From the NCBI GenBank assembly GCA_964036045.1, contig OZ038379.1, positions 76,012,001 through 76,076,000 of the forward strand: a DNA stretch of 64,000 bases. Reading direction: 5' to 3'. The DNA is from Eutreptiella sp. 'Long Island Sound 2002'. Lineage: Eukaryota; Protista; Euglenida. Shown piece after piece: positions 3,244 through 35,500 of the stretch (within the stretch, counting starts at the first letter, position 1; each line of letters begins with the position of its first letter). Below the pieces are notes generated by a model, which saw only the letters and a list, made by a program, of their open reading frames with translations, was not told the origin of the DNA and made no database searches. Made by a program: the position numbers and the translations under genes.

Positions 3244-4822
3244 TGAGGGCACAGTCCAGGCTACAACAATTTTGTCTCCTGTGATGAAGGCACTGTAGAA
3301 GGCCAGATGACTTGAAGCGAAACTTGCGCACCGCCGTTATTGTACTGCGCCCGGTTGCTGAAGCAACGTGCGGTGTGGAATTGAAGAGGTTAATTTGACT
3401 AGGCAAGTTGCAGTCTTCTCAAGTCTCGAGTTCGGAGTCCCTTTATATTCTTCTTCTGTTCTCTTATCTCGCTTTCCGCAATTTGCGCAACTCCGTGCCC
3501 CAGCTTTGACGAGCGCACTCGCGTTCTCTGTGCGGGTGTTCTGGTAATGAGGGAGGGGGGGGAACGTTGAGGGATGCGACGGCGGTGGTTCGCACACCTG
3601 GGAAAGCAACCTCGGACCGTTATGCTTTGTCACGAAAGCTAGGGCCGCGTAGGTCGTCTACCACCAATCATTTCTCGATCCAGGTGGAATTTTACGAAAA
3701 GACCGAACTGCAACAAGACATTGACATCCTGGCATCGTGTGTGTTTTAGTTACTATAGATGGGGAAACTGTGAAACTTCACCGGTAACATTGGGGTTGGT
3801 AACAACTTTTGTTGGTGCATTCCATAGTTCGCTCCGAAGGGGTGTCCACCAGTCTTATTTGCTCTTGTTAAGTGGCCTTTGCAACAACCAACTTGCTATT
3901 GCTATTAATTTATAGTTCAAGCTCGCAATTTCGTGCCCAACCGTTGGGTCTCTTGATTATTGTGGAAACTTTCATCTTCTCTTTCGAAGACACGTGACTT
4001 GCAGCATGAAGTATCCCAAGGGTCGCTTCGTGTCTTGTGAGCAAAATTGAACACCCGTCATACAACACAACCAACAACAACAACCAACTACAAGAGACCC
4101 TTTTGTCCAACAACTGATGATATGAGCTTTTATTTTGGGCCGACAACATTTTTTGGGCACAACAATTTGATTTCTTTTGACATCTTTTGTGTGATTTTCT
4201 TATTAGTATTACTTGCTCGAAGGGTCATTGCAAGAGGTCGTTCCACGGGGTACAAGACAGCTGTTAGCACATTTTGAAACCGTGTAGCCCGTTCCACCTC
4301 GCACGGTGCAAGTGGGAGAGGCTGCAATCCCCACACCCAAAGCAAAGCATGGCTATCATCCGTCGATCACTTGCGGCACAATGAGCATGATAGGGAGGGT
4401 TTTGATGAAATGCCCCCCCCAAAAGAAACTCGCTTGTGACGTCAAACAAAACACAAGTACATGGTGAAGGAGTGCGTTTCGATAGTCTTCTTTTTCCGCG
4501 GACAGCTTTGCACAAGCAGCAAACAGACGTCTTGAACCGTAATACTTGACGATTTATTTGTTGTCCATTGAAGCACAATGACCGCATAATGTACTATGGA
4601 ATTCACGTTGTGCATACGCTAAAATGTAAATGTGCTCTTATTCTTCGTGTTCCCGCGTGCAACACCCTCGTCTGCCACCCCGTGAGATTCCAAACCACCC
4701 AATCTCAGCCCACATTTCCAAAGTTTCTATTTTTTTTTCTGATATCCCAAATCCCACGGATGGCTTGAGATTTGGGCTTTGGGCCCACACTCCACGTTGT
4801 GAGCTCCTACAACCTCACTGCC

Positions 4823-7862: not shown

Positions 7863-10800
7863 CCCCTCCCCCCCGCCAAACGGGCATGCGTGCAGCCACA
7901 CAGCAAGGCACGGCATGGACGTGGAGGGACGGAGGTGACTTAAACCCCCATACCCCAGAGGTTCTGGCTCAGGCGAGGCATGACCCGAGCAGGCGCTAGA
8001 CAGGACAGCTGCATGACATGCATGACAGTCTGCATGCTTTTGGAGGCGCCCCAGGCGACCACGGGGGCCTTGGACCCATACGGGCCTCCCTGTATAATAT
8101 TGTTCTTCCCCCGACCTTTCCACACACACACACACAGACCCGCCACCAACACATTTATGCTATTTTTATCTCGGCGTACCGCAGCCGGGAAAATGAAAGC
8201 GGGCGGAACGTAAGGGGCTGCTCCAGTCCAATCGACCTCCCTTCCTGAGGGCCTGAGTGCTCGGTAGACGGTAGGGGGACGTGGTAGTGTATGGATACAA
8301 TTTTTGGAGGGACCATCCTCGCAACTCGATGGGGAGATAGAAGCCATTGCGGATTTGCTTCGTATAGCCCCTTCAGATGTAGAACCGCATGTAATGTGTT
8401 CGTCAACACATGTCACAAACATCCTCTTATTTTTTCTCCCATCTTGGGCGGACAGTGGGTGGACCAGGGTGCTGACGTCCGAAGATTAAATTGCGTGTCA
8501 TGCAGTGCGTCCACCACAAGTGCTCCCACCAACAGGTGACAGTACACTGGCACGCTCGCTCACCCCTAGCCCGATGACCTTAGTGTACCCCTTATTAGCA
8601 TCCCCATCTGCCAGTGATGGATCTAATTTGTGCGCCACTCAGGGGGTGGGGGTGGGGGGGGGGGGGTAGTGAATTGTGACATGTCACAAAAAATACAATA
8701 GGCCATAGTGGGAAAACAGCTTTTCTGAAAATATTGTGACACCCAAAAGGCTCTGCGGTACTTCCTGAGGGCAGTGGTATTTCCTGAGGGCATGTGGGCA
8801 GGTTGCTGAATAGTTGTGTCTGTGCTTCTGACCTTGCTTCTGACCTTGCTGTTTTTTGTGACATGCATCCATCCATTGCATGCACAGCATAGAGATGAGA
8901 CGCGGTGTCAACTGACACTGTGTTCTCTGTAGGCTCTGAAGACTGCCGATTTGTCTGCTGCATCCTTCCGACAGCCTTTGTCACAGTTCTGTCATGGGTC
9001 GAAAGAAAGTGGAATGTCAGTGTGATCCGCCGTGTGTTTCTGCCGCGGCATGTCGACGCACAGTGAAAGAAGAGCTGCGTGAACTGCAGAAAAAACATGG
9101 TCCATATGAGAGGTGGTTGCGTCACAATTTAGTTGTGCGAAAAGAGGTCAAACAGGCTGTTTTGCAGGGCTGGGTGTTGGACAGTAAGGGGGTCGGGGGC
9201 GCTGATGTGACGAAAACAATTTTGTTGACAAAGCTATTGCAACAGCTAGAGGAAAGGTTTCAGAATGAGGCATACTCCCAGCTGCAGGTTGCAGATTTCA
9301 AAGGACAAAGGAAAAGAACGGACCAAGGAACGCGTTCTGCCAGAAACTGCAGAGTATGTTGATAACCTGGGACAGGTTTCAGATTCAGGCAGCTCCCTGT
9401 CCTCTTTTGGAAGCATTTCCACAGATGCTTCCAGCGCAAGCGCCCTCACTGTCAGTGACGAGGAAAGTGGTACTGACAGTGACAGTGACAGTGAATGAGA
9501 ACCCTGCTGCACAGTGACAGTGAATAAGAACCCTGGTGGACTACCCAGAAACAAAAAAAAACTGTTTGTTGTTGCCTGTACCCTGCTGCACACACATGCC
9601 TCTCTGGAAGGGTTGTCCTGCTTGCCTCCTGGTACCCTGCGTGGCTCAATCTGTGACCGGGTTTTTTTGTGACGCGTATTGTGACGCCTCGTCACAACAG
9701 GGGGGGGGGGCGGGGAGGGAGGGACACCCCCCCCCCCCCAATTAGATCCATCACTGCCATCTGCCACCTTCGCCAATATACTCCCCAGTGGCTCGGTCTC
9801 TGTCGCTAGTGTATCCACCGCTGACTCCTAGCCCGCAGTGTGGTACGCCGCTGTGAAGCGGCGCAGGAAAGTTAGGTAGTTATTGTCGTAATTTGCGGCC
9901 ATTGTATGGTTTGTTCGTTGCGGTGTTTCCACTCTTGACCAGGTTTGCTATGGTTCGTTGCGGGGGGCAGATGAGCAATGCGGGAATTGAGCGTGCTATG
10001 TTTCTCCTACGACTCTAATCCGCATCCCAAGCTGTGTGCCAATGTGTTAGTCATCGGCCTGCCAGTGTGGCCTCTTGGACATGGAACTTATGGTTTCGCT
10101 GATGAATGGTAGGATCCTAGGCTTGTTGAACCTCGCAATTTGAGCTTTGACTGAAATCCTTGGGCGTCACACACACATGCACACACATACCACATAGGGA
10201 GTACCTTTTTTTTTGGTACGGGGGGGGGGGTCCAAGAACATATTGAAGAGAGGTTATTAGATCAAGCCCAGGTGCAAACACATTACACCCTCTTTTTGCG
10301 GGGTCGTTCGCATAGCATACCCCAAGGCATGGTTTTGATGTCTAACCCGATGTAAAATGTTTTTCTTGCAGGATAAAAACAGTTCCCCAATGGATTTTTG
10401 ATTTTGAGCCCTTTATCCCCCCCGGAGCTGGATACCATTTTTTAGGAGGTGGGGGGGGGGGGGGGGCAATAGTTTGTGCTTCGAAGGATTTGAACTAGGA
10501 TTGGTAAAGCAACTCATGGGCGAACCAACACTCGCTTAGTCTCCGGTCAAATGTTCTACGACTCCACCATTGATCGTTGGTACTGAAGTGCTGTTCCCCG
10601 CTTCTTGTAGCTGTAGGCTTCCACCAAAAAAAGCCAAACTGTGTGTTTTTGCCTATATGGTGAGCATAACCTGGCATACCAGGAATACCTGGTAGTATAC
10701 GGGTAAAAAAGGGGGTTTTGGGAGAAAGGGGTATGTGGCATGTACAGGTGGCTACTAATGTACAATGCACAATGCATGCATAGGTGGGTTGGGGAATACC

Positions 10801-10863
10801 TCTAGTTTGCCAATTGTGATGATGAATGTTGTGTTTGAAACTACCCCATTTTGGGCTCTTGGG

Positions 10864-10957
10864 GTATACGGCCGTATGCTCAAGGCTCCAATACCTCAGT
10901 ATACGGCCGTATACTCTGGAGTACACGGCCGTATACTTAGAGTGTACGGCCGTATAC
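10864..10957. repeat. Palindrome array 1 (GTATACGGCCGTATAC, 4 copies)
   Basis: Copies at 10864, 10899, 10921 and 10942; one is perfect and three carry a single substitution. Confidence 0.9.
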
Positions 10958-11099
10958 CGGGGGTATTTGTTTGCACCACGTGGTTGTTTCAAGTTGAAAA
11001 ATTCCATTTTTGTGCCTTTTGTGCCCATCTTGTTGCATGCTTTGCCTTTGCCAAACAATTGCACACCACTTGAAACCAATCTAGGCTCATACTTCACTC

Positions 11100-13368
11100 A
11101 TGATACTCATGATTGCAATGTATGTCTCCATATGTGTCCATTTCAATCCATATTATGTTGCTTCTTGCTCTCCTAGGCCCCCTTTTTCTGGCACCATGAC
11201 TGATGTGGGCACTCATGCCTTGCTGAAGAAGTGGGCCGACCACGTAGCTCTCCGCACAGTGCACAGAGGTGTTTACAGCCCCGACAGCACACGCACCGTG
11301 TCTTGGGCTTCTCTTGAGAATTGTGCTTGGTCCACCTTGGACACCCCTGTGGCCCCGGTGAAGGTAACGCAACCCGGCGTTGCCCAACCGCACATCCTCA
11401 CTGACCCTCTGTTGTCGTTGTTTGACAACAACCCGAATCTGCAAGCTATTGTGCTGCAGCTCCATGACACGGATGCCCGCGCTGTCGTGGAGCACGTTAA
11501 AAAAAGCTGTGGGGGACCAAATAGGGGGATGAGTTTGTATTTGAGGGAATGGGAGCTGCCGGATGGCTCTCCGGGGATTCCGGTCTCGGGGGACCTGGCT
11601 GCTGGCTGGTGCAAATGGGAGTGCAAGGCCCAGCAAGTGCAGCGGGGGCATTGGGAGGACACCGCCCCCCTCTGCTCCCTCCACTCCCAGTCGCCATGGT
11701 CGTGGCATGCCGATTTGGAGGGCCACACCCTCCCCACCTGGTACAAGGGTACTGGGATGCACCCCTCCCTTTTCTTCCCCCTCACCACCACCCCCCTTTC
11801 TGGTGTTGAACACCATCGTGTCTCCATCCCCATTGAGGTCGTCGATCATCGTCATGTCGACGACCTCAAGGATTTCAAGCAATGGGGCCATGCTTTCCAA
11901 ACTGGCTTCATTTCTGTCGATTGGATGGACAAGCTTCAGAATGAGTATGGGGAACTTAGGGGGGATGCGGGGGTCAATATTTTTAATGAGGATTGGCCCG
12001 CCGACACTCGTGCAAGGGACAGTGACACGCGCCGCACATTGACTCCACCGGAGGGGGGTGCAATGTACAGCTTTGCAAGGGAGGTCCTTATACCCCACTT
12101 GGAGACTTGGGTTGGAACTGTCCGGTGGTGAATGTTACCACCTTTATTGTGGTGCAGGCCGGTACAGTGGATGTGGAAAAAAAACAGTGTTGGCACCGTG
12201 ACATTAACCTCAGCTATGTTACCGGTCCGGACCAACACCATGTGATTTGCTTGTTCCCGATGTTCTGCCCCACACCCGATGATGGTTGTGCTGGGGATTT
12301 CGTGGTTGCATCACACACGGGCCTCCCGGACCCTTGGGTGGAGGCCCCATTGGCCCCATTGGCCATCGGGGATGTGTGGTTGGGCATTGCACTTACTGTG
12401 CATCGCGGAGGTATTTGCCCTACCACTAACCCCAATCGGCCCCATGTTTTTGGTTTCATTTCAGTTGGTACCTCAAGGTTCGACTACAACAACACTTGCG
12501 CTGTTGTTGTTCCCCCTTGGGCCAGCAAAGCGGCCGCATCCCCCCAAGGGTCTCAAGGCCCTCATGCCACTTGTGGTGCAGTTGGTTGTGAGGTGTTGCT
12601 GGATGTGAGTGATGATACCACAGTTTTTTGTGTCACATGTGGTAACGTGCCATTGTGTGCCACCCACGGCGTGGAGGGGCAATGTGGTGCCTGTCAGGAG
12701 GGCGCTTGGAATCAGGGTGAGACAATGACGCAACACAGTGGTGTTGCATGGGGTCGTTGTCCGTCCCCACTGCAGTTCTACATGCCCGTTGATGGGGCTA
12801 CTTTTTTTGCAACTGATGAAAATTTGACCCCCAGCCCCCTTCGAGTTGGGGTTGAGGGACCCTTCATATGAGGAGTGCCCATTGCGGCAAATGCATGCTA
12901 ACCCCTTGCCTTTTGTGGGCTCGGATGGCACTTTCCTTGCTTGTCCCCCCGGTTCATTGGTGGTTTCGCGGGGTTCGATTGGTGGTGTTGCTTTGGCTTC
13001 CACCGATGCCACAATCGGCGGGGTTTTGCATTGGTTTGCACTTGGCCACAAGCACCACCTCATGGATGTTGCACTGGCGGAGAGCTACGGTTGGGTGAAG
13101 TGGTGGCCATTCAAGACCATCTCAAGGAAGAAGAAGTCCAAGCTGAAGCCCAAGCCAAAGTCAAGGAAGGGCAAGGAGAAGGCCGGGGAAGAAGTTGAGG
13201 ACGTGGAGGAGGAGGAAGAGGAGAAGAATGAGCTGTGGTGCATCTGCAATCAGGTATTTGTTGTGGGCTGTGGGCATGGGGGGAAGTGTGTTGTTGTTAT
13301 TCATTAAGTGTCATGCATGTCAAAAGGCAGGGTCACCGGTGGGTTTTTTTTTTGCCTGTCGTCAGTGC
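11100..13368 (+). pseudogene. Cargo gene A (frameshifted): possible JmjC remnant, PhyH-like 2OG-Fe(II) dioxygenase, Cys cluster, acidic/basic linker, decayed PHD finger
   Basis: Overlapping ORFs 11100..12131, 12107..12871 and 12846..13307. Dioxygenase motifs QCWHRD (12185-12202), GDV...VHRGG (His at 12401) and NRPHVFGF. Cys cluster CxxxxC...CVTC...CATH...CGAC. PHD remnant WCICNQVFVVGCGHGGKCVVVIH*VSC...[frameshift]ACRQC (13239-13368). Confidence 0.7.
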
Positions 13369-13549
13369 CTTGGTTGCGGCTCTTCAGGTTGAATTTTTCT
13401 TTGATCATCAACCTTTTCAACTTCTTCGCAGGATTCTTCAATGGCCTACACACGTTTTTGCATGTTTGAGGGCATTGGGGTTTGAACCAGGGACGTTACC
13501 GTGCAAGTGTAGCATGCATACCTCTCACCCACCCGGTGCCATGGTCTGG

Positions 13550-13763
13550 CAATACGGCCGTATACCTTGTGTATACGGCCGTATACTCCAGGTATACGGC
13601 CGTATACCGCGAGTATACGGCCGTATACCTGCCCACCCATTCCGGGTATACGGCCGTATACTCGGGGGTATACGGCCGTATACTTGTCGTATTTGTTGCC
13701 AATTTCAATCGATTTTGACTAGCTCTTTGTTAGAATTCCACCCTTTCGTATACGGCCGTATAC
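13550..13763. repeat. Palindrome array 2 (7 copies, spacing 21,21,21,33,22,80 bp)
   Basis: Copies start at 13550, 13571, 13592, 13613, 13646, 13668 and 13748. An adjacent segment of about 62 bp is directly repeated (13684-13746 and 13765-13826). Confidence 0.92.
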
Positions 13764-13883
13764 TCGTCGTATTTGTTGCCAATTTCAATCGATTTTGACT
13801 AGCTCTTTGTTAGAATTCCACCCTTTCTTCCCATGTAGGTCCAGTATGATCCCTGGCCACTGCGGAGCATCACTGATTACAAA

Positions 13884-14974
13884 GTGGCCGAGCCCGAGGT
13901 GGAGTTGGTGGCGCCGAAGGCTGCCGCGGGCCAAGTGGTCTCCGGTCGGGAGTACGTGGAACCCATTCCGGTGGATCGGGGGGATGCTGCCAGTGCGCCC
14001 TCCGACCTGGCATACCACTGGCAAAGACACTGGGTACTATTCCCGACTGAATGTCCGTGCCAGTGGTGCACTGTATGATATTCGCCTGCCCATTAGGGTC
14101 ATTGCAAATTTGAAGGAGGGGGTAGTGGAGGCCATTTGGGGGGCTGCAGTGTGGAGCAAGAGCTCCGGGAAGGTGCGGGTTTTTTTGAGCACCACGGGGG
14201 AAAAATGGAGCATTTCGGACTCCATCATGGTGCTCCAAAGTTTTGGGGGAGAGCCTGTCCCCCTGGAGCAATCCCTGGCCCTCCAGGCCGAGTTGGCCGC
14301 GAGGGCGGGAAAACAGCTTGGGGGGAGGGGGCTGAAGCGGGCTCATGATGAGCCCGCTGAGGTGAGCGCCACCCCTGCAGCCCCCCCCCACCCGGAAGGC
14401 CCCCAAGCCTTCCGGGTCAGTTGTTGCTGCTGTTGCTGTGAGCTCAGGGGGGCTTGAGGGGTTTGGGGGGGTGGGGGGGATTGAAGTGGCTGCCCGCCGT
14501 GGCGCATGCGAGGCCCTGGGGGACCTCGTTGTGCCCAGCACCACTCACATTGTCAGTGGTGTTGTGGCGGGCTTGGGGAAGTCCCGGCTGAACATCTCCA
14601 AGGAGATTGGGGAGTTCAGCCGGACTTCCCTGACCTCCTTGAGGGAGGCCAATGCCTCCCTCAAGGAGGAGCTGAAGGCTGCCCATGCTGCGGGTGACGC
14701 CAAGGAGAGGAGGATTGTCGACCTGGAGGCCAAGTTGGCCGAGGCCACCACAAGTGCCCATGACTGGCATCTCAAGGCCAAGGAGTTGGAGACGCAACTC
14801 CAAGCGGCCAAGGCCAATGAGGAGTGGGCGAGGTCCATTGTGGCCCATAGTGTCACACGGACTGCAGCCCCACCCCAAGGGTCTGAGAGTCAGGGCAGTG
14901 GGAGTCAGGGCAGCGGGAGTCAGGGCAGTCAGTCCGCCTCCCCAGCACGTGGCCTGCCCCCAAAGCCGCAATGA
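13884..14974 (+). pseudogene. Cargo gene B: unknown globular region plus coiled coil and SQGSG repeats (frame-disrupted)
   Basis: ORF pieces 13884.., 13795..14457 and 14438..14974. Heptad-like LREANASLKEELKAAHAAGDAKERRIVDLEAKLAEA...LKAKELETQLQAAKANEE. 15-bp repeats near 14888-14932. Confidence 0.55.
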
Positions 14975-15004
14975 CTACCCCCATCCAACCCCGCCCTTGC
15001 AGCT

Positions 15005-15589
15005 TTGTGCCGAGAGTTGGTGTACCGCAAATTGCACATCTTGGGTGTACAAGTGCACAATGTGCAGTTTGGGGCTACAGGGACACGCCGGCAAGGGAAG
15101 GATTGGCGTTGTGCGCGCTTGTGCAGCGGGAATGAAAGGCAAAGGGAGCTAATTTGCCTTTCAAATGCACATGTGCATGCAAATTTTCCAAGGTGGTTCC
15201 ATTGGACCACCATTCAAGTGGTACAATGCAATACTTCACAAAGAATGCCGGGCCATCGCCATATGAAGGATCCTTCTCCGCTTTCCGCCATTTGCGTTGT
15301 CGGGGCGCATAGTGGTGGGGAGGTCTGTGTGGAAACAGGTGGAGTGCTCCATAGTCCCACGCAAGGGACCCCGATGCGGTTGGATGTACATGGAGGTGGT
15401 GTTGTGGATGCGAAGGCCTACAAGGGCTGGCCGGGACTGGTTTTCAACTCCAAAGCCCACCACGGGCCTGCCCCATGGAGGGGGGAGCGCTATGCCATTG
15501 TTTTCTACAATGGGTGCAACACGGATTACCTCCCTGATGAATCTGTTGAAGAGTTATTGGCCTATGGCTTTCGTCCTTGGGGCCACTAG
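15005..15589 (+). CDS. Cargo gene C: TET/JBP-like 2OG-Fe(II) dioxygenase domain, HxD changed to HxH (possibly inactive)
   Basis: FHWTTIQV...GHRHMKD (15251-15271)...SAICVVGAHSGGEVCVE...LVFNSKAHHGPAPWRGERYAIVFY follows the TET/JBP order HxDxxD/N, GG strand, distal His, R-x-small. 5' end uncertain. Confidence 0.72.
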   Translation: MCRELVYRKLHILGVQVHNVQFGATGTRRQGKDWRCARLCSGNERQRELICLSNAHVHANFPRWFHWTTIQVVQCNTSQRMPGHRHMKDPSPLSAICVVGAHSGGEVCVETGGVLHSPTQGTPMRLDVHGGGVVDAKAYKGWPGLVFNSKAHHGPAPWRGERYAIVFYNGCNTDYLPDESVEELLAYGFRPWGH

Positions 15590-15595
15590 TGAGCA

Positions 15596-15661
15596 CCGTA
15601 TACTACTAGTATACGGCCGTATACCCTTGAGTATACGGCCGTATACCCGAAGTATACGGCG
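15596..15661. repeat. Palindrome array 3
   Basis: Full copies at 15609-15624 and 15631-15646, plus half copies at about 15596 and 15652. Confidence 0.88.
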
Positions 15662-16001
15662 AACGGTTTGCGCTGAATCTTGCATGTTGTGCCCTTGTGG
15701 CATGTGCCTGTGCGCACGGTTCCATTGGGCAACTGGCCCACATATGCCTGGAACATTTTTTTGCAGCAATTATTCTAACCACTATGTTTGCGAATGCCCA
15801 TCCGAAGGAGAAGGGGCTCTGTTTGGAGAGTATTCAAGAATTTTGTGAGGGAATCAAACCCGGCAATTGACCCCCTATGCAGTATGTGATCTGCATCCAC
15901 AAACGTCAACGCCACCACATTTTATTTTGTTTCACATCATATGGCCCACCCCGTTTTTTTTACATTAGGATTGCAGGGAAAGAGGACAACGGCAAAGACG
16001 T

Positions 16002-16708
16002 TTGTGGATGCAATCGGTAGCATCAGCATTGCTTGGAGATGATGTACTTTTACGACCCTATGCCCAAGGCCTCATGATTATTTTAAAAGATGGTGAGGTG
16101 GATGCGGCCGACAAGGAGGCAATTAACCTACTCCGATGGATGCGGCGGCACCACCTTTCCATCCGGGCATTGAAGGGTTGCATGAGGACAACATGCACTT
16201 GGGACCATGTGATGGCAATGCGTAAGACCATCACACCTCACCTGTCCAAGGGGAGGGTTTTGGAGGTGGCCACTAAAGGGGGTACGCGGACATGTGGGGT
16301 GGTGGAATTGCATGATATTGTCACCACCATGGTTGCATGTGCCCATGCTGATGACAGCATTCGGAAGTATGAGGAGAATACATATTTGGCTGTTGTAATC
16401 TGTTCTGATGCCACTGTTTTTCATAATGCCAGTGCCACACGCTGTGACGTGTTTGTGGACCTATGGGAGGATAGGGGGGCACACCATGATGGTCAGGCAT
16501 GGGCCTCATGGTGGGTTTTTGATGGGGGGGATGATATGGCCCACCTGCAAAGGATGGATGCCGTGGGGAAATTGAATGACCAAGTCAAAAAACTTGAAGC
16601 CGAGGGTGGCATAGAAATTGGGGGAACTCCCAAAAAATTATTATGTTTTAAAAGTGGGGATGGGAAAGTCATGATGTCGGGTTCGTATGGGAAATGTTGG
16701 AATTGCAA
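16002..16708 (+). pseudogene. RAG1/Transib-type DDE transposase, N-terminal half (interrupted by a LINE)
   Basis: LAVVICSDATV (first Asp), WWVFDGGDD, FKSGDGKVMM (second Asp), GKCWNC (Zn CxxC). First ATG at 16074; an upstream acceptor TAG at 15966-15968 is possible. Confidence 0.8.
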
Positions 16709-18320
16709 CTGCCTTTGCGCGCGGTCAACCGAGATAAGTGGGGTCCATGGCTGTGGGGGACACTGCGATTGCCGGGGTATGGGGCACCCTGGGAAACCGG
16801 GCCGGTGCTGTGCCCACGGTGTGGACAGCGCCATGGCCTTGCAGTGCAGGAGTGCCTCTTGTCATGCCCCTCCGAATCCCGGTTTTGGGACATTTGGACC
16901 GACGCATGGGAGACATGGAAACCGGAGGCAACCAAGTGGCGACGAACGGCGTCCGCAGACGAACTGCGCATGTGCACCCGCTTGCAGTTCCCACACTCCC
17001 TTCAACGATCCTTCCTTCCAGTCCAGGCGCACTGGAGGGTGGTAGTTGCCACATGGCACTTCCACGTATTCCAGCGATTGCAGGCGTGGGTCGTTGACAA
17101 GCTGCAGCACGCCCCAACTTTCGTCAGCAACAAGCGGCCCACGCACATTGTCCCACCTGTTGCTGGGGCCCTGCCGCAGGTAGCTAAACCTACGGCCCGC
17201 AACATTTGGAACCACGTGAGAGGCGTACTGTCGATCCCGCCGCCATCAGAGCCACGTTTCACAGATACTGCGCCCACGGTGGAGGAACTTCGGTGGCAAT
17301 TGACACAAGCGGTCACCACTGCCGAGCGCACGTGGGTCTTGGAGGCCATGGCCCGGCACCACCATGTAGCACCGCCGCGCAAACGGCCCAGAGAACCGTC
17401 GCCGCCACCGGCACAGGCTCCGGTCTCACCGCCGCGCGAGTCTCGTGAAATTCATGCCGGACCCTTCCTGGAACAGGCTAGGCGTCTCATGCTACACGCC
17501 CAAATGCAGGCCGCACGACTCTGCCTGGAAGAGGTGGCGCAGGCACTCGCCCGGCAAGCCGTCACACAGAAGTCCCTCTTCTTGGCACACCACCACGAGC
17601 ACTTGTGCCGGCAAGCGTACTTCCTCTACAAGGAACATACGACGCGGTGGTATGTAGAAGCGCAACAGGCGGTCTACCACTTGTCCTGGATGGCGGGTTC
17701 TCGCCGACTACGCTTCCGCCAGTGGCGAACAGCTGTCCTCCCCGAGGCGCGGTCCACGGTGTCGCGCAAGCTCGCCGTGGCATCCTCGTGTTGGGAGCAG
17801 GCACATGTTTCGCTGTCCACCGGCATCCAAGCGGAAGAAGCATCCGAATGGCGGCATATGTCCCAAGTGCACGCGGTGACCCTTACGGCCTTACGGCGGA
17901 CGACTTTGTCGGACCCCCGACGGGACATCCGGGGGGCCACCGCACAGCGCACGAAGCGCTTGCGGGACGAGATCCCACCCGAGACACACAAGAAACGGAG
18001 GACAGAGGCGCCGGAGGTTCCTAGTGATCTCCAGGATATGGAAATCCCGCTGGAGGACATGGGCGATGTCATAGTCTTGACTGGATTGTAACACCCTGAG
18101 AGGTCCGGGAGGACGCGCATACCCGTGCAAACGGGGCGACAGGGGTGGGGCAAGGCGCAGGACTCGTTCCTCCCGCCACCCCGCCGCAGCCGTCTTGGTG
18201 AGGGTAGGTCATACCAAACCCATACCCAAAGTCGGCCCTGTCACTGACCCATGACCTGCTATGTGTACTCTCAATGGACACTTGGTGGAACTTCGGTCAC
18301 GAGTTAAAAAAGAAAAATAA
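16709..18320 (+). mobile_element. 5'-truncated non-LTR retrotransposon insertion (1,612 bp) with a 17-bp TSD
   Basis: TSD AAATGTTGGAATTGCAA at 16692-16708 and 18321-18337. A-rich tail AAAAAAGAAAAATAA at about 18306-18320. Open frame to 18091 starting with a Zn-knuckle-like CPRCGQRH...ECLLSC. Confidence 0.9.
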
Positions 18321-18337
18321 AAATGTTGGAATTGCAA

Positions 18338-19181
18338 TCTCAAGTATGACCAATTCCAAGCCCATTTATTTGCAATTGCAGATTTTCCAGTGGTTCCTCG
18401 CATTGGGTCCCTTATGTCTTGCATCCCTCCCGTCCGCAATGTTGGAGATGTGGCACATTGTTGTGCAAGGGTGGGGACAGGCACTGGGAAACGTCTCAAG
18501 GACAATGCCCGCACATGGGGCTCACCAGGAGCCCTAAGGGCCGTGTCCCATTTCATTTCTAACCTCCGACAAGAGGCGAAGCACATCCCTGTGGCTGAGA
18601 GAGTGATGCGTGCTCCCTCGAAAGAGAAGGAACACACTCTCGACATTAACGCCTCTCGCCTTTTTTTCGAAACACCTCAGTTGCACGCCAAGTTGGTGCG
18701 CATTGTTGCAATGTATTGTACCCATGTTGTGAGGTGGGAGGGCAACAGGTGGTTCAAAACCAGTGCCGTCCTGCACCTCATGTTGCAGGCCTGTTACTAT
18801 ATGCAAAAGATTTGGCGCCATGTGGGTCCTGTTCCCATGGATCAACGCCAACGTTATGCATGCATGGTTACGGTTTGGGTGCATTGGGTGGTGTGCCACA
18901 GTGGGGCACACCTCCAAAGGTGGGGGAATTTTATTAAGTTTTCCTCCATTCCCACGGAATGGAGGAACAAAAGTTTTAAAATGGACATCCGCCATTGTTT
19001 TCAAGGGTGGAAGCTGAGCGAGCCTTATGTCACCCGATGGGGACTAAGGCATGCTCTGCATCTGGATGCCCTTGAATGGGGCATCCGGTTGTGGTTTGGG
19101 GAAAAGGGCTTGGGTAGAGAGGGGATCAGGTTTGGCATGCAATGCATGCGGAAGAAGCATCGTGCACCAAAGCACATGTAG
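18338..19181 (+). pseudogene. RAG1/Transib-type DDE transposase, C-terminal half
   Basis: In frame with the N-half once the insertion and one TSD copy are removed (KCWNC-NLKYDQF). Motifs GDVAHCCARV, VHWVVCH and GNFIKFSSIPTEWRNKSFK. Confidence 0.82.
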
Positions 19182-19437
19182 GTATATATCATGTGATATG
19201 ATATGATGTGCAATATGCATAAGTATGTATAATAGGTATATATAACATGCGGAAGTGGATCACATTTGACATTTCGGATGGGACATCAAAGAAGGATGCT
19301 TCTTGTGGTCTTCTGCTTTGCTCATATGGTGCTCTTTTGTGTGTACAATGTGTTTGGGGGTTGGAGAGTCATGAGTACTTGCAAGGGGGGGGGGGGTAGT
19401 TGATGAGAATGGTGGCATGGGTGTGAGGCAGAAAGTC

Positions 19438-19482
19438 CCCGTATACTCCGAGTATACGGCCGTATACTCCGAAGTATACGGC
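19438..19482. repeat. Palindrome array 4 (right subterminal)
   Basis: Full copy at 19452-19467 flanked by half copies; ends CCGAAGTATACGGC as array 3 does. Confidence 0.85.
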
Positions 19483-19899
19483 AAGAATACTTCTCCAATA
19501 CTTCGAGTATACTGCCAAATACCTCAAAAAGTGTAGATTGCCACACACAGGTGTGGGTGTATGGAATTGGCTTTGTGGTTTTTTGACCCTCCCCCCCCCC
19601 CATTTTCAGGGTGCTACTCATTTTTTCATATCCCATGGGCACACGGAACGACTAGGTACATGTGACAAAATGGCTGTTTTAGGGGGTATTCTTGGTATGC
19701 CAGGTTATGCTCACCATATGCTTGCCTGCCTGCTTGCCTAACTGACTGATTGGCTGATTGTCAGCCTAACTGGCTGACTCTAGTCTCTCTACCAGGTGCC
19801 TTGCCAAAGGCAATAGAATTTGGTTGGCCTATAGTTGGCACCGTGCATCGATTCAGACCCAGGTTCCAGTATTTTTTTCTTCCGTATGGACCCTTGAAC

Positions 19900-21830
19900 C
19901 GCTGATGGGGGTCCAACTTTCCAAGATGGCTCCCTATGGGATGGGGCCACATCGGTGAGAACTTTATTATTTTTGGGCCACCATGGGTTCGCTGAAAAAT
20001 GGCGTTGAAAAAATTTTGGGTAATATCTGACAACCCTTGGGGACCCTTGGGCTGCTGTTTGGTGATTCTTTGGTGAACAGGGGAGTATGTCTCAACCCAT
20101 GGAGAGCTATGCGGCACCAACTAGGCACTCCTCGCAGTGCTTATTGGCTTCCATAAGTGCCGTTTGTCTTTTGTTTGCACAGTGGTGCTCACAACTTGGT
20201 TGGCCTATAGCTGGTGTTGTGCGGCAATGTGGACCCAGGTCTTGGGGATCTTTTTCTTTTCTACATGGACTCTAACCAATTAAAGGGATCCCTTGGTGCT
20301 ATCTATCCCCCTTTTGTAGCTTCTCATGTGGCCTTGGGATCGGCAACTGCTTACGATCCTCTTCAAAATCCCGCCCCCTCCACGGCTGCACCCTTTTAGC
20401 AATGGGGCTCCAGGCTTGACTTTCACCAAGACAGTTTCTTGAAAGCGGTACCGCGGCGGGCACCTGCCTTTCACATGCCCGATGTCTTTGTTTTTTTTTG
20501 CTCGCTGCTAGTGGGATGACTTCGGAGGGATGCCTTGGGTGCGTTGTTGGAGGTAGTCCGGTTTCCTTGGTTTTTTCCAATTTCCGGCCTCGTCTGCCTC
20601 GTCGGCTTAGTGTGCCAGTGTGCAAGCCTAAGCTTACCGCCTCTGCACCACGCATCCACCTCCATTTTCTTAGTATGGGACAAGCCGATTGTCATCCCGC
20701 GGCTAGCTCCACGCATGAGCCATTCAACCTTCCAAGTGATCCGCAGACTTTCCTTGCGTCGGGCTAGATTCATGATTGTCTGTCCGCAAATTCTCGCAGC
20801 TGCTGGGCGGGTTGGCTGAAAAATGGTGATTTTTGGGCGACCTCTGACAACCCTATGAGACCCTTGGGCTATTGTTGGGTGGTCGTTTGGTGACAGTGAT
20901 AGTACGTATCAACCCACGGGAAACCATGCTACTAATGGATCCCATGGATGCCTACAAAATCAGTCTCTTGGAGGTTCAAGGTTCGGGGCGGTCTCTCTAT
21001 AAGGTGGACTTGCCAAAGGCAATAGAAGGCAACCCTTGACGGACCTCCGGACCCTTGGGGCATTGTTAGGTGATCATTTGTTGACAATGGGAGTAGGTAT
21101 AAACACATGGGGAGCCATGATGCTCAAAAATCTGATGGATGATCGCAAAATCAGCCACTTGGAGGTTCATTGCTCGGGGCGGATTCTCTGCAGGTGGACT
21201 TGCCAAAGGGCCATTGTTGCCCAAGCATTTGGTGACAATGGGAGTAGGCATGAACACATGGGGAGCCATGTAGCACCCACTAGGCCCTCTCAGCCGGGCT
21301 GAATGGCCCTTAAAAGCAGCGTTTTGGGCTTGTGTGCACTGTAGTGTGAAAGTTGGTTGGCCTATAGCCGCCACCGTGTGGTGTCTCAACCTATAGTTCC
21401 ATTCCACCTTTTTCTTCTATATGGACCCCTTATCCAATAACGTGGGACGTGCTTATCTCCAAGCTTTCCAGATCGACCCCCAAATGGGGCCCCACAGGTG
21501 AGAACTTAGCCGTTTTCAAGCTGGCATGGGTTGGCTAACTTCGCTGGGACCCCCAATCGCTACCGGGGACCCTTAGGCTATTGTTGGGTGATCATTTGGC
21601 GACCACGGGAGCATGCCCAAAGCCAAAGGAAGCCACACCGCCGGTGGATGTGATGGATGGTTCTTGCACTTTTCTCCCACTATCGGTGATTACCGACCCA
21701 ACAAGGAAGTGGGTGACCGCCACGGGGTTCTCAAGGCTACCAAGCCGAGCAATCAAGTTGAACAACATGAAGAAAATGACGGCATTTGATTTGGGTATAT
21801 GCCACCTACCGCATGTTAGGCCCATGTAGC
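19900..21830. repeat. Degenerate satellite-like repeat; a related block lies at about 59400-60230
   Basis: Recurrent GGGTGATCATTTG(G/T)TGACAAT...GGGAGCCATG...CACTAGGCCC motifs in both blocks; boundaries approximate. Confidence 0.55.
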
Positions 21831-23499: not shown

Positions 23500-23760
23500 A
23501 TCACCTCAAAGAGAGGTTGTTAGATCAAGCGTAGGCGCATACGCCATGTCCCCCCCCCCCTTTTTGGGCATGTTCGCGCAGCATTCCCCAAGGCATGATA
23601 TTGTATGTCTATCCCTTTGTAAAATCAGTTTTTTGCCCGACAAAACAATCCCCCAATGGAATTTTTAATTTTGAGCCCTCTATCCCCCTGAAACTGGATA
23701 CCACGTTTTTTTGGGGGGGGGTCCAAAGTTTGGGCTCAGAAGGATTTGAACCAGGGCCGG
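23500..23760 (+). repeat. Dispersed repeat paralogous to 10240-10500; partial copies at about 6700-6960 and 38170-38340
   Basis: Shared AGAGAGGTT(G/A)TTAGATCAAG, CCCCAAGGCATG, CCCCAATGGA.TTTT.ATTTTGAGCCCT.TATCCCC, CTGGATACC. Confidence 0.65.
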
Positions 23761-23819
23761 GTAAAAACAAAGCTGATACATCGACCAGCAACACGATCGC
23801 CGGCCAAGATTCAAACTGA

Positions 23820-23977
23820 CGCCCGCCAACCGCCAACCGCCAGCGGCGACCAACCACCAACCGCCAACCACCATCAACCACCAATCCCCAACCACCAACC
23901 GCCGCCAACCACCACCAACCTCCACCAACTGCCAGTCGCCAACCGCCAACCGCCAACCGCCAACCGCCAACCGCCAA
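23820..23977. repeat. (CCAACCG)n / (ACC)n-type microsatellite
   Basis: Repeated CCAACCG and CCAACCA heptamers; these generate the spurious WRLAVGG ORFs. Confidence 0.9.
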
Positions 23978-24709
23978 CACATGGTGTGCCCGCGGGCTTT
24001 TTTGGGAAAACTGTGTAAAGGAACACTTTTTTTTTGGTTAAGGACCGCCCTGGCTGTAGACCACCACTGAAAAAGGCAAACTGTGTGCTTTTGCCTGCCT
24101 GTCTGCCTGCCTGCTTGCCCAACTGACTGCTTGCCTGACTGACTGACTGATTGGCTGACTTTCAGCCTCTCTTCGAGGTGCCTTGCAGAAGGCAATCGAA
24201 TTTTCGAAACTGATTTTTTCAATGCTGTAACCATCCATAGTGATCAAACATCTATGCATGTCTTGGGCCCAATTTGTGTGTTTTTCACCGCATTTGGTCA
24301 TGGGATGCTGGGGTGGATGCTGGGGCTGGGGGGAGGGGTGTTCTTCACAGGGGACTGGTGCACGACCTGCTTATGCAGTTTTCAGCCTCTGCAGCTCAAA
24401 ATTGGAAATTTTCGAGACTGATTTTTTTGATCTTATGACCATCCACAATGATCAAATATCCCATATAAAGTATGTTTCAGACTTTCTTTGTGTAATTTTC
24501 ACGTCGTTTGGCCACTGTGGCAGGGCTCGGGGGGCTTCCTAGGTACGTGCCCCCTACCCTCTTCTCGGTGCCTTGGCAAAGGCAAAAGAATTTTTGATAT
24601 CCCAAACTGGGCTCATGCATTGCACCACTTGATACTCTGGTTTGGCTTTTTGCGCTGTGCCTGCATCTATCTTTGTGGGTGCTCCCATCTTGGGTTTGCC
24701 TGTGCAAAG

Positions 24710-32053: not shown

Positions 32054-32562
32054 GTCATTTTGGGATTTGCTGCCTCGTGATATCTCCTGTTGCCTGAATG
32101 GCTGAAAGCCCCCCCCCCCCCCTCTTTTCGTCTCATCCTGACATGTGTTTGTTGTTGTGACAGAAACCATGGGTCATGCCGTGTGTATTTGTTTGGCTTT
32201 TCAATGCTGCAAGCTCAAACCATTTCAAAGCACTGCATTACCCATCCCCGGGCAGACTTTGGATGTAGGGGGTCATGTGCATTGGCGGGACCCCATGCCA
32301 CAACAAAGGTCCAATGGACACGGCACACAAAATCCCACCTGGACCAAACCTGCACACATCACCCAACCCGAAATTTGGAAGAAGTGAAAATGGGTGTTTT
32401 TTGAAGCACCGAAGTGGAGCCAAAGGACACCACGGCATGCCATGTCCGGTGAGGCTGTGCAGTTAGCAGCGCATCTGAGCGATGTTTGGCAACCCTGAGT
32501 CACCATCACTCAAGTTGGCGCCCTCACCCGTCATTTGTCCACTGATGCATTCATTTGTTCAG

Positions 32563-35500
32563 GTGGTGGTGGGGTATGACGACATGTTCCGGGATGCAAT
32601 GGGGATGGCCCCAGGCGACGAAGGCTTTACACCCCCTGTGATCGACCCCCACCACCAGGACCTTGCACCGCAGGTGCTGAATGCGGGCTGCTACGACGCT
32701 AATTACGTGGACACCAACGACCGGCGTGCCGGTGAGCGCGGCTTCCAGCCCCCGCTGCATGGTGTCATGCTGCCAGAGCGGCGCACACAGAAGGCTGTGG
32801 GGCTCGCGGAGGGCTATGACGGCGATTACCGGGACCCCTTTGGCCGGACACCAGGGGAGTTGGGCTTCCTGCCTCCGGTGTACAACCGGGATTACATCGA
32901 CGCTGACGGCCGCCATGTAATGGAGGAGGGCTTTATCTCCCCGATCACTGGCCCACAGCGCCCGCTGCCCGCCGGGTGCTACGATGACGGCTACCGCGAT
33001 GCAACTGGAAAGCGGCCCGGTGAGGCCGGGTTCGTGCCCCCGCTCTTGGCTGTGCAGGGGAGAACGGCAGAGGAAATGGAGCAAAGCATGCCACAGGGCT
33101 TCGACTCAAACTACCGAGATCTGGAGGGGCACAAGCCTGGCGACGAGGGTTTCCAGGCCCCCATGCAGCAGCGGACGGTGATCCGCGACGAGCAGACCGG
33201 GATGGTGTATTTCGTGACACCAGCCGACAGGCCGTTCGTGCCACTGGCATACAATTCAGGTTACCAAGATGCATATGGCCGGCGCGCGGGTGACGCCGGG
33301 TTCGAACCACCCGGTAAGGATGGCTTGCATTTGCTGGCAGGTGGCTACGACGACCAGTATCGAGATGCCAATGGCCGGAAGCCTGGCATGCTGGGTTTCA
33401 TCCCTCCAGTTGATGCTGCCAAGGGCAGGACTCCTGAGGAACTGGCCGAAGCGCAGCCGGAAGGTTACGACCAACTGTACCGAGATCCGAATGGCGTCGC
33501 CCCGGGACAGCCCGGCTTCATCTCACCAAAGGGCAGGCTTCCCGAGAACGAGGTGGTGCTGGACGGGACTCATGAGGCGGGCTACGACTCGAACTACCGG
33601 GATGAGGATGGGCTAGCCCCCGGGGATGAGGGGTTCCGGCCGCCACAAAGCACACCAGGGGTGCCCAGCCATGAGATGGACGCTGGGACCTACGACGCGC
33701 ACTATGTGGACTCAGAGGGTCGCCGGCCCGGCAATCGTGGCTTCCTCCCGCCGCTGCGCGGCATCATTGACCCGAAGGTGCGTGCCCACAAAGCAATGGG
33801 GATGCTGCACGGGTATGACGCCGACTACCGCGATGCCCAGGGCCGGCGACCGGGGCAGCAGGGGTTCGTGCCACCCTGTTACACACAGGACTGGCGGGAC
33901 GCAGACAACCGGCGCCCCGGGGACGAGGGCTTCATTCCCCCGACCGGAGATGGGAAGTCACTGGGCTATGGTGCTTACGAATCGGGGTACCGGGACGCCA
34001 ACGGCCGGCGGCCAGGCGAACCAGGGTTTATCCCCCCGCTGGCGGCGCGCGAGGGCAAGACTGCTGCCCACATGAAACAGGAACTACCGCAGGGGTTCAA
34101 TGCAGGATACCGAGATGCCATGGGCTGGGCGCCGGGTAATGAAGATTTCGAAGCCCCGCCCCCCATAATGTCGCATGTCCGTGATCCTGTCACAGGGCGG
34201 GTGTATTTTACCAAATCTGCTGTTCCCGGGGCTGCGCCTGAGCAGCCTTTTGTGCTTCCGGCCTACGATGCCTCCTACACCGATGCCGCTGGGCGCCACC
34301 CCGGCGACGAAGGATTTGTGCCGCCAGCCGCCGTCGGAGTGGCGCTGCCGGTGCATGCCTACAATGACCAGTACCGGGACGCAGCCGGACGGAAGGCGGG
34401 TGACGTCGGGTTCGTCCCTCCGGCAGCCGCAGCGGCAGGCAAGACCCCGGCGGACATGGCGGTGGAGATGCCTGACGGCTACAATGAGAATTACAGGGAC
34501 GCGGCCGGTCGGCAATTCGGGGACCCAGGGTTCGTGCCTCCGCAGCCCTCGGCGACCAGGTCTCCCTCGCAGGGGCTGGTGCCAACGGTGCAGAGCAGTG
34601 TCCGGACAGGGTACGATGCCACGTACCGGGACAGCAATGGCTTGGCACCGGGGGAGGAGGGTTTCATGCCCCCAGCACTGGACCCCAGAGTACCCTCGCG
34701 GCCGCTGCCGGCCGGTGCATACGACATGAATTATGTGGATGCCAACGGCCATCAGGCCGGAGACCGTGGTTTTGTGCCTCCAATCAAAGGGATCACAGAT
34801 CCGGAGCGGCGGGCATTGAAGGCTGCAGGGCTTCCCCTCGGCTATGACAAAGACTACATGGATGCCAACGGTCACTGCATGGGCGAGCCCGGGTTCATCC
34901 CTCCAGTGTACTCGAGGGACTACACAGACGCGCAGGGCCGCCATGTCGGTGACGCAGGGTTTGTGCCCCCAACCTCCTCAACGCCCCTGGGCTCTGGTGC
35001 CTATGACAACAGGTACCGGGACTCGTATGGTCGCCAGCCTGGGGAGCCAGGGTTTGTGCCGCCACTGCGGGACTGCGAGGGTGCGACCCCGGAGGAGATG
35101 GCGAAGATGTTGCCCCAGGGTTTCGACTCCAACTACCAGGACTCTGCAGGGCGCCGGCCTGGTGACGAGGGGTTTGTGGCCCCCAGCAACAGCCGGTTGC
35201 TCATGATTGACCCGCGCGCCGGGATTGTCCATGTCACCACACCGGACTCCTCTTTCAATGAGGGGATTGCAAAGGCGGCTGGGACCACAGCGCTGGGTGA
35301 TGTTCCGGCCGGGCTGCTGCCTGACGGCACGTACAGCGACAACTACCGGGATGTCAACCAGCGGCGGCCTGGTGAGCGGGGCTTCATCACTCCAGCGGGT
35401 GCCGCGGCCGGCAAGAACGCATCGCAGATGTCAAAGGAGCTCCCCGAGGGCTATGACGGGCAGTACCGAGATCGGGCTGGCCGTCGCCTGAAGGATCCCG

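Follow-up and report, generated by a model that had tools for sequence, protein, structure and literature searches.

Structure and integrity of the element

Within the window, that is, the whole 64,000-nucleotide stretch of DNA analysed here, positions 10658-19716 (9,059 bp; 5'-TGGTGAGC...GCTCACCA-3', delimited by comparing three complete copies, namely the one in the window, L008 and L009) hold a decayed copy of a cut-and-paste DNA transposon that is autonomous and present in high copy number. Its terminal inverted repeats (TIRs) measure 32 bp: the left one (10658-10689, + strand) begins 5'-TGGTGAGC, is one of two inverted-repeat matches in the window and has an identical end in L008 and L009, and the right one (19685-19716, - strand) ends in GCTCACCA-3', as supported by the inverted-repeat match and the three complete copies. 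An earlier sequence-only reading had proposed 35-bp TIRs bounding 9,065 bp. The inverted repeat that it described (10655-10689 against 19685-19719) is real, with 34/35 positions identical and no further occurrence within the window, but the 35 bp include the 2-bp target-site duplication and one chance match, which shortens both the repeat and the element. The duplication is TA at both ends (left, 10656-10657; right, 19717-19718) in 3/3 complete copies, with no longer match past TA, and at four further right ends the next 2 bp are TA, TA, CA and CA; across all of these the flanking 2 bp vary and the TG...CA termini stay constant.

The intact form, seen in other copies, is 7.47 kb long and carries four co-oriented genes, and four coding modules are likewise found on the + strand of the window copy, as had been reported. 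A full-length copy, L009, aligns collinearly with the window across 7.47 kb (91-96% identity) and shares its TIRs and TA flanks. The decay of the window copy was also correctly recognised: ORF1 and ORF2 are frameshifted, the ORF4 transposase gene is split, and ORF3 is an intact gene.

The split is due to a secondary retroposed insertion of 1.6 kb (16709-18321, + strand), identified by its A-rich 3' tail, by a 16-bp target duplication (16693-16708 = 18322-18337) and by its presence in the window copy only, as it is missing from every other fetched copy, including L001 and L009. It carries a 465-aa open reading frame (16694-18091) without a Pfam or PDB match, which was rejected as a gene of the element and assigned to this later insertion. 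One genuine secondary insertion, together with internally recurring palindrome arrays and the frequent nesting or abutting of copies in this genome, might suggest that the 9-kb unit was assembled from several smaller elements nested in one another, with those arrays as their limits. We regard this as highly improbable, given the end-to-end collinearity of L009, the lack of TIR-like or duplication-like junctions beside the internal arrays, and the behaviour of deletion derivatives (L004 and L008, which retain ends and cargo without the transposase), whose breaks fall at varied internal points away from the arrays.

Transposase fold and classification

The 528-aa transposase is encoded in two parts, residues 1-234 at 16008-16709 (+ strand; tblastn with P0002, 94% identity) and residues 229-528, containing H430-x4-H435 and E455, at 18321-19181 (+ strand). 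Its AF2 model (pLDDT 82.5, pTM 0.81) gave a best Foldseek E of 1e-12, with HzTransib (6pqx) at 1e-7, and the best 49 PDB structure matches were all RAG1, BbRAGL or HzTransib. By VIA-align, model residues 32-514 superimpose on RAG1 460-1007 with Z 22.6 and on HzTransib with Z 20.8, a third RAG1/Transib-type match reaches 19.6, and the next fold follows at 12.5. Among 17 transposase sequences of 28-41% identity, D147, D218, C230, C233, H435 and E455 are invariant, and the C230-x2-C233 and H430-x4-H435 zinc-site pairs, located between the second Asp and the Glu, are, together with the D/D/E residues, invariant or nearly so. As modelled, ORF4 thus has the RAG1/Transib core fold, and the original description of a DDE transposase with RAG1-like motifs is borne out by both structure and conservation.

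Sequence-level methods return none of this: with E up to 1, Pfam assigns a RAG1 domain to none of the 17 members, and the PDB yields no sequence match by single sequence or by profile. An Atlas shape search gave TM 0.69 to clusters bearing PF18759 (Plavaka) and PF02992 (Transposase_21) vs 0.59 to RAG1, and predicted Plavaka and CACTA transposase structures fit it as well as RAG1 does. Because the core fold is combined with zinc-site pairs between the second Asp and the Glu, the predicted structure places the transposase in the EnSpm/Mirage/Chapaev/Transib ('CMCT') clade, where it forms a lineage that goes unrecognised by every profile library. The 2-bp duplication lies within the 2-5 bp typical of that clade and the shape search supplies the expected structural similarity to EnSpm and Plavaka transposases, whereas the 5'-TG...CA-3' termini depart from the 5'-CA...TG-3' of most members.

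The proposed RAG1/Transib type therefore stands for the core architecture and falls for Transib proper, which is excluded by the 2-bp rather than 5-bp duplication and by TG...CA rather than CAC...GTG ends, and to which the equally good Plavaka and CACTA fits do not point. What is shared with Transib and RAG1 is the whole catalytic core, with its DDE residues, the zinc-site pairs and the 20 residues from the second His to the Glu; what differs is the length of the duplication, the lack of a 5'-CAC TIR start and of heptamer-like CAC...GTG termini, and the lack of sequence-level similarity, including any Pfam RAG1 domain or PDB sequence match. Assignment to the RAG-like (RAGL) transposons was also considered and rejected, as no RAG2-like partner (kelch + PHD) accompanies the transposase and Pfam finds no kelch or PHD match in ORF1-3.

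Accessory genes

Upstream of the transposase lie three accessory genes, of which the first, ORF1 (11196-13307, + strand), comprises an N-terminal region, a predicted PhyH-type Fe(II)/2-oxoglutarate (2OG) dioxygenase domain, a Cys/His zinc cluster and a basic/acidic tail ending WCICNQ. Frameshifts near 12110 and 12850 interrupt it in the window copy; its C-terminal half is a single 403-aa ORF in L009, and an intact relative, P0200, has 592 aa. The dioxygenase motifs read WHRD ... HRGG. A distant homologue (L007:3195-4781) matches Pfam PhyH (PF05721) at 3.4e-6, with 27.9 bits vs a cutoff of 22, P0200 itself scores under that threshold, and the ORF1 profile A4 matches FtmOx1 and AsqJ with both the WHRD and vHRGG motifs aligned. 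On these homologies ORF1 is assigned as a PhyH-type dioxygenase with a Cys/His cluster, in agreement with the PhyH-like enzyme first suggested. Such enzymes act mostly on small-molecule or protein substrates. The ~270 aa ahead of the dioxygenase domain were assigned no fold, and searches of Pfam and of PDB sequences with residues 1-280 of P0200 brought up no ParB domain. The PHD finger proposed earlier is not supported: Pfam gives no match at E up to 10, a stop codon follows 15 codons past WCICNQ in all copies, and other copies do not keep the Cys residues that lie downstream in the window.

ORF2 (13828-14974, + strand; ~375 aa) carries a C-terminal coiled coil, as anticipated, on the basis of weak Pfam coiled-coil matches, beyond which Pfam returns nothing. 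It is frameshifted in the window copy by a 2-bp deletion and a 1-bp insertion, and each copy has its own private indels; the majority consensus of five copies is one open frame.

ORF3 (15020-15589, + strand; 189 aa) is 93% identical to P0025 and is probably a small Fe(II)/2OG dioxygenase, judging from its Atlas feature score of 0.96 to Fe2OG clusters and from H79, D84 and a distal H ... R-x-A pattern kept across subfamilies. Its metal motif reads H-x-H-x-x-D, followed by a distal H and then R-x-A, and departs from the canonical H-x-D. It has no match in Pfam (E up to 5-10, including Tet_JBP, PF12851), PDB, PHROGs or NCBIfam, and its AlphaFold model (pLDDT 38) did not recover the fold. Of the TET/JBP-like dioxygenase claimed by the sequence-only reading, the probable 2OG enzyme remains; the TET/JBP label, drawn from language-model similarity in which Tet_JBP-bearing clusters score more weakly (0.87 or less), is only a lead. 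A third 2OG oxygenase, raised as a possibility, was not found.

Conservation of the cargo across the family

The family is large, with 107 transposase and 151 ORF1 members in the 90%-identity protein clusters, and the wider transposase lineage falls into 387 clusters at the 50% identity level, none of them named and most of them derived from marine and estuarine metagenomes. Directly upstream of the transposase, ORF3 is present in L003 (46% and 55-58% identity), in three pairs in L002 (9019/9784; 20036/18970, 29% and 28%; 3006/2072, 31-37% and 25%) and in L008 (31%). In metagenome contig L007 an ORF1-like gene adjoins a transposase of 32% identity, and no cargo is recognisable within 1-2 kb of the metagenomic transposase relatives L005, L014 and L015. 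Comparisons between sublineages give dN/dS values of 0.22-0.31 (transposase), 0.44-0.48 (ORF1) and 0.19-0.36 (ORF3); in young copies the ratio is ~0.7-1.0 for ORF1 and the transposase, and the ORF3 pairs have too few substitutions for an estimate.

These data bear on the view that the accessory genes are passively captured host fragments of the Pack-MULE or CACTA style, without a role in the life cycle of the element. EnSpm-type elements are known capturers of host genes, and most copies examined are broken; this explanation is nevertheless largely refuted and retains very little probability, as the order of ORF3 and transposase is kept where the proteins are only 25-55% identical, dN/dS approaches 1 only among young copies, and the ORF2 consensus is open with each copy broken at a different place. 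The persistence of ORF3 upstream of the transposase down to ~25% identity, the dN/dS below 0.5 of ORF1 and ORF3, and the fixed positions of the palindromes described below establish that the cargo is integral to the transposon family; it is constant among the other copies, and a one-off capture, the outcome that would have undone the original proposal, is not what they record. Short, low-depth contigs in estuary metatranscriptomes, in which DNA carry-over is possible, give weak evidence that the element is transcribed.

Palindrome arrays and a proposed anti-silencing function

Allowing up to 1 mismatch, the window contains 13 occurrences of a CpG-containing 16-bp palindrome, GTATACGGCCGTATAC, where 0 are expected; they form four clusters, none of them outside the element, in both subterminal regions and two intergenic ones. 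Array 1, left subterminal, has four units with a period of 21-22 bp (10864-10957), and array 2, between ORF1 and ORF2, has six exact units (13552-13763), so that ORF1 is flanked by the two; an 80-bp tandem duplication at 13668-13827 is private to the window copy, the other copies aligning with one 80-bp unit. Array 3 separates ORF3 from the transposase gene (15596-15660), and array 4 is right subterminal (19439-19482), with an equivalent at L003 3224-3259. Subfamily B has the same palindrome at the same positions, including that of array 3 (L003 889-989 and L002 9298-9363), though the remaining DNA is barely alignable, and in subfamilies C and D the equivalent positions are occupied by another motif, CGCGATAAC(TAGTTATCGCG).

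The three conserved accessory genes and the palindromes lead us to favour, with a probability of roughly 0.55, the reading that this decayed CMCT-clade transposon uses its dioxygenases to counter silencing of its own DNA or chromatin. The palindromes would serve as binding sites of a dimeric element-encoded protein, for which the transposase N-terminus, the ORF1 zinc cluster and the ORF2 coiled-coil dimer are candidates; searches recovered no DNA-binding domain from any of the ORFs. Binding would mark the DNA of the element itself, for end recognition and promoter control, and dioxygenases recruited to its DNA or chromatin could oxidise a base modification or a histone mark that imposes silencing, so that the element stays transcribed and mobile.

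A more specific and rather doubtful version holds that the family-specific array is an address co-evolving with the binder of the element, and that both dioxygenases are brought there and oxidise silencing marks on its own DNA or nucleosomes. The oxidised mark could be 5-methylcytosine or, in the case of a euglenozoan host, the enzymes could hydroxylate thymine en route to base J. A comparably tentative alternative treats the arrays as ordinary subterminal and internal transposase-binding repeats, like those of En/Spm TnpA, that serve synapsis and promoter autoregulation only, with the dioxygenases working away from the DNA of the element, their targets being proteins of host chromatin, RNA or a metabolite. 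The arrays do adjoin both TIRs and lie upstream of ORF2 and the transposase gene, the motif changes in step with the transposase subfamily, and the PhyH relatives with solved structures (FtmOx1, AsqJ) use small molecules. Yet both motifs, as CpG-rich palindromes, are naturally open to cytosine methylation, purifying selection maintains two different oxygenases within only 7.5 kb, and analogous elements combine a 2OG domain with repeat arrays (10.1101/2025.02.11.637652).

Significance and relation to known systems

RAG1 is the enzyme that assembles antibody genes, and the element adds a large transposase lineage with a predicted RAG1/Transib core fold, widening the known range of forms around the V(D)J recombinase ancestor. 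The association of transposons with 2OG dioxygenases, described in fungi and red algae, reaches a further protist group, in a compact, conserved architecture of two putative oxygenases, a coiled-coil protein and family-specific CpG palindromes that, at 7.5 kb, is small enough for testing whether a transposon edits its own chromatin to evade silencing. Should self-addressed editing prove true, it would be the first case of its kind connected with a lineage of RAG1-fold transposases, one found widely among marine protists and missed by current profile libraries.

In En/Spm (CACTA), through TnpA, and in VANDAL elements, through VANC, an element-encoded factor recognises short, clustered subterminal or promoter repeats and counteracts methylation of the element. 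To our knowledge, neither system has a base-oxidation enzyme of its own; here, there are several candidates for the binder, and two 2OG dioxygenases are the putative effectors.

TET/JBP-carrying transposons of the CMCT clade, including ESTA (Kojima 2025), occur in fungi and have been read as anti-silencing devices (PMC12730594). The present family resembles ESTA in its TA target duplication, in a 2OG dioxygenase gene inside the TIRs, in a RAG1 similarity visible only to profile or structure methods, and in the proposed escape from methylation-based silencing (PMC12730594), a likeness drawn from duplication, fold and cargo description. It differs in its occurrence in an algal/protist genome and in estuary and marine metagenomes rather than in rust fungi and mushrooms, in having two different dioxygenases, one of PhyH type, and a coiled-coil gene, in a small oxygenase that falls below the Pfam Tet_JBP model, and in palindrome arrays without a counterpart in that report (PMC12730594).

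Also close are the giant Plavaka elements of red algae, which carry PAG1-3, PAG3 combining a ParB-like domain with a PHYHD1-like 2OG domain and adjoining inverted-repeat arrays (10.1101/2025.02.11.637652). Common to both are an EnSpm/Plavaka-clade transposase, an accessory protein with a PhyH-like 2OG domain (the best HHpred match of PAG3 being 2OPW), inverted-repeat tandem arrays beside the PhyH-like gene, here ORF1 between arrays 1 and 2, and the idea of an element that binds and modifies its own DNA. In contrast, the element described here is 7.5 kb rather than 17-19 kb long, lacks an N6-adenine methylase/SET gene (PAG2) and, in searches of Pfam and PDB sequences, a ParB-like domain in ORF1, and has a second, small probable dioxygenase, a 2-bp duplication and TG...CA ends. 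The combination, initially described as unrecognised, is accordingly less unprecedented than it appeared, same-clade carriers of TET/JBP or PhyH-like genes being known (PMC12730594; 10.1101/2025.02.11.637652), and the variant found here is new.

Element boundaries and related copies

The 9-kb unit is a cut-and-paste transposon that combines a RAG1-fold DDE enzyme, a 2-bp target duplication, three conserved accessory genes and conserved palindrome arrays; its reading as a composite of nested elements was rejected. An inverted repeat pair at 10655-10689 and 19685-19719, matching at 34/35 positions and lacking a third match within the window, had been described as a 35-bp TIR. All three complete copies (in the window and at loci L008 and L009, fetched around relatives) end in TA-TGGTGAGC...GCTCACCA-TA, and the 2 bp that follow four further right ends are TA, TA, CA and CA. 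Taken together, these ends place the element proper at 10658-19716, with a 2-bp target duplication, and while the inverted repeat is upheld, the true TIR is 32 bp long and flanked by TA. In this small sample of ends TA predominates as the duplication, and in the window, L008 and L009 copies the repeat extends no further than these 2 bp.

A word-based protein search returned 24 relatives of the window transposase, none named and all in ENA assemblies. One of them, P0002 (528 aa), falls in a 90%-identity cluster of 107 members, and an intact 592-aa relative of ORF1 (P0200) belongs to a cluster of 151. At locus L009 the element is full-length at 7.47 kb, and its sequence is collinear with that of the window (91-96% identity).

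The element is embedded in repeated sequence, of which 10246-10455 and 19723-19821 have a 78-83% identical copy 4 kb downstream (23509-24203). A paralogous site at 23800-24215 was considered as an empty site and rejected as a duplication reference, since the element sits in a (GCCT/GCTT)n microsatellite, which makes the downstream paralogue unusable. Element copies are often nested inside, or abut, one another, and at locus L004 a piggyBac-type transposase (PF13843) and a chromodomain-containing LTR retrotransposon adjoin them (640-1617 and 15982-21779).

Decay of the window copy and its surroundings

The window copy is decayed, as the sequence-only reading had proposed: its transposase gene is split, ORF1 is frameshifted near 12110 and 12850, and ORF2 is frameshifted by a 2-bp deletion and a 1-bp insertion. 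An 80-bp tandem duplication (13668-13827) is private to this copy. The 1.6 kb that interrupt the transposase gene (16709-18321) are absent from every other copy, end in an A-rich tail and lie between 16-bp direct duplications (16693-16708 = 18322-18337). Tail and duplication are the signature of a retroposed insertion, which may represent either a processed retrocopy or a non-LTR element of unknown type. Because it lies in this insert, a 465-aa ORF (16694-18091) was rejected as an element gene; it has no match in Pfam or PDB sequences and no second copy in the fetched loci. A separate 6.5-kb insertion within ORF2 at locus L001 (2295-8830), missing from the window and L004 copies, contains ORFs of 260, 269, 499 (coiled coil) and 587 aa without a Pfam family.

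Of the sequence words sampled from the element, about half are present in sequencing runs of two organisms and in estuary metagenomes. Estuary metatranscriptomes yield short, low-depth element contigs of 90-97% identity, in which, at this low depth, no splice joints were seen. Elsewhere in the window, a 1,774-aa ORF (32482-37806, + strand, 60-64% G+C) matches no Pfam family at E up to 0.001, nor do five further ORFs of 316-518 aa, and searches of the window for Rfam families, tRNA and a euglenid spliced-leader pattern were negative.

The transposase

Neither single transposase sequences nor their profile matched anything in Pfam, PDB sequences, PHROGs or NCBIfam, RAG1 included in the PDB search. 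An exhaustive HMMER search nevertheless recovered 387 cluster representatives at E up to 1e-3, many of 475-576 aa and 31-42% identity; all ten relative clusters looked up were unnamed and lay on short metagenome contigs. In an alignment of 17 sequences, D147, D218 (in GDGK), C230, C233, H435 and E455 are invariant, while H430 is kept in 16/17 and D134, in the predicted first beta-strand, in 15/16; D134 and D147 are both candidates for the first catalytic Asp.

An AlphaFold2 model built from this alignment (pLDDT 82.5, pTM 0.81) found RAG1, amphioxus RAGL and Helicoverpa Transib as its 49 best Foldseek matches in the PDB, with a best E of 1e-12. VIA-align gave Z scores of 22.6 for RAG1 (model residues 32-514 on RAG1 460-1007), 20.8 for Transib and 19.6 for RAGL, the next fold being the P-element transposase at 12.5. 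Compared by shape with the ESM Atlas, the model reached TM 0.65-0.72 with unnamed eukaryotic clusters, 0.69 with Plavaka and Transposase_21 (CACTA) clusters, and 0.59 with RAG1. To our knowledge, RAG1 and Transib are the only solved structures within the EnSpm/Transib clade, and since Plavaka and CACTA clusters also match, the fold is read as that of the whole clade.

The initial assignment to a RAG1/Transib-type element is therefore retained for the core fold but not for Transib proper, which was rejected because the 2-bp duplication and the TG...CA ends fail two defining Transib features. The element fits the EnSpm/Mirage/Chapaev/Transib (CMCT) clade as Kojima defines it (PMC12730594).

Integration of the cargo genes

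The cargo is integral to the element family. In four further subfamilies of the Eutreptiella genome, whose transposases share 55%, 53%, 28% and 25% identity with P0002, ORF3 is the gene immediately upstream of the transposase and is co-oriented with it. At a fifth locus, L008, an ORF1-like gene is followed by an ORF3-like gene and then by the transposase, at about 31-37% identity. Copies with the same TIRs and no cargo would have pointed to a one-off capture; the opposite was found, as the deletion derivatives seen (L008 and L004) keep ends and cargo and have lost the transposase.

Between the window sublineage and that of L001, L004, L008 and L009 (dS about 0.10), dN/dS was 0.22-0.31 for the transposase, and the cargo genes gave 0.44-0.48 (ORF1) and 0.19-0.36 (ORF3). 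Young copies of ORF1 and the transposase gave about 0.7-1.0, as expected for decay after insertion; their ORF3 pairs had too few substitutions to judge. Around the metagenomic transposase relatives at L005, L006, L014 and L015, no cargo was seen in the very short flanks; a related-locus search with the transposase returned contigs of 1-2 kb or none.

Accessory proteins

The earlier identification of a PhyH-like dioxygenase holds for ORF1. Its WHRD- and vHRGG-type residues recur in a 26%-identical homologue on metagenome contig L007, which adjoins a transposase of 32% identity and exceeds the Pfam PhyH threshold (3.4e-6, 27.9 bits vs 22); in a four-sequence ORF1 profile, both motifs align to the PhyH-type enzymes FtmOx1 and AsqJ. 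Downstream of these motifs lies a conserved cluster of 7 Cys and 1 His, and residues 1-270 returned no match. A PHD finger, also suggested previously, was rejected as unsupported: a stop lies 15 codons past WCICNQ in all copies, and the downstream Cys of the window are Ser or absent elsewhere.

A Pfam search of all window ORFs and intact relatives assigned no family to the transposase, ORF2 or ORF3. ORF2 is broken at differing places in every copy, and its majority consensus is open for ~375 codons with a coiled coil at its end. Within this frame (window 13828-14974 and equivalents) no ATG precedes codon ~140, the sole Met being internal, and translation may start upstream, at a non-ATG codon or via splicing or trans-splicing.

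ORF3 (189 aa) is probably a 2OG dioxygenase: it matches Atlas clusters named Fe2OG dioxygenase (score 0.96, 209 shared features) and conserves H-x-H-x-x-D, a distal His and R-x-A. Searches of Pfam, PHROGs and NCBIfam, and of the PDB with an ORF3 profile, were all negative, hhalign found no relation to ORF1, no ORF3-related loci were found in metagenome or viral contigs, and an AlphaFold model from a 10-sequence alignment gave no usable fold (pLDDT 38). Of the proposed TET/JBP-like oxygenase, the probable dioxygenase thus survives; the TET/JBP label, with every profile search negative and Tet_JBP-bearing Atlas clusters among the weaker matches, is kept as a lead.

Palindrome arrays

With one mismatch allowed, the window contains 13 occurrences of the 16-bp palindrome GTATACGGCCGTATAC, where 0 are expected; they have a period of 21-22 bp and form clusters that all lie within the element (10864-10957, 13571-13763, 15609-15646 and 19452-19467). 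Subfamily B (copies at L003 and L002), whose DNA can be aligned to the window in two short coding stretches only, has the same palindrome and period both in the gap separating ORF3 from the transposase and downstream of the latter. The more distant subfamilies C and D carry another motif, CGCGATAAC, at equivalent positions, in places as the perfect 20-bp palindrome CGCGATAACTAGTTATCGCG; both motifs contain CpG. Conserved position combined with family-specific sequence indicates that the arrays are candidate cis sites, read by a dimeric element-encoded protein.

In a subfamily-C element at L008, 14 repeats of a 42-bp unit (15635-16233, 93% matches) separate the small oxygenase from the transposase, so that the array found there is greatly expanded in that copy. 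At L003, a different palindrome, CGAATTCGCTGCGAATTCG, forms an array (4281-4411) next to, but not within, the subfamily-B element; this array probably belongs to another transposon family.

Proposed mechanism and comparison with known systems

With moderate confidence, and by analogy, the arrays would guide an element-encoded protein to the transposon's ends and promoters, where both oxygenases would remove a silencing mark. This proposal follows published readings of TET-carrying fungal transposons (PMC12730594) and of red-algal Plavaka elements (10.1101/2025.02.11.637652). In the former, the oxygenase is read as acting against silencing; in the latter, the accessory protein PAG3, with ParB-like and 2OG domains and the PhyH-type structure 2OPW as its best HHpred match, adjoins inverted-repeat arrays.

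The transposase lineage, the pairing of a PhyH-type with a small oxygenase, and the family-specific palindromes were not found in the literature searched. The principle of CMCT-clade transposons carrying 2OG oxygenases together with repeat arrays is already published. The ESTA lineage of rust fungi, placed within CMCT, has a TA duplication and a similarity to RAG1 detected by HHpred only (PMC12730594), and thus has in common with the present element both the TA duplication and a RAG1 similarity that lies beyond sequence searches.
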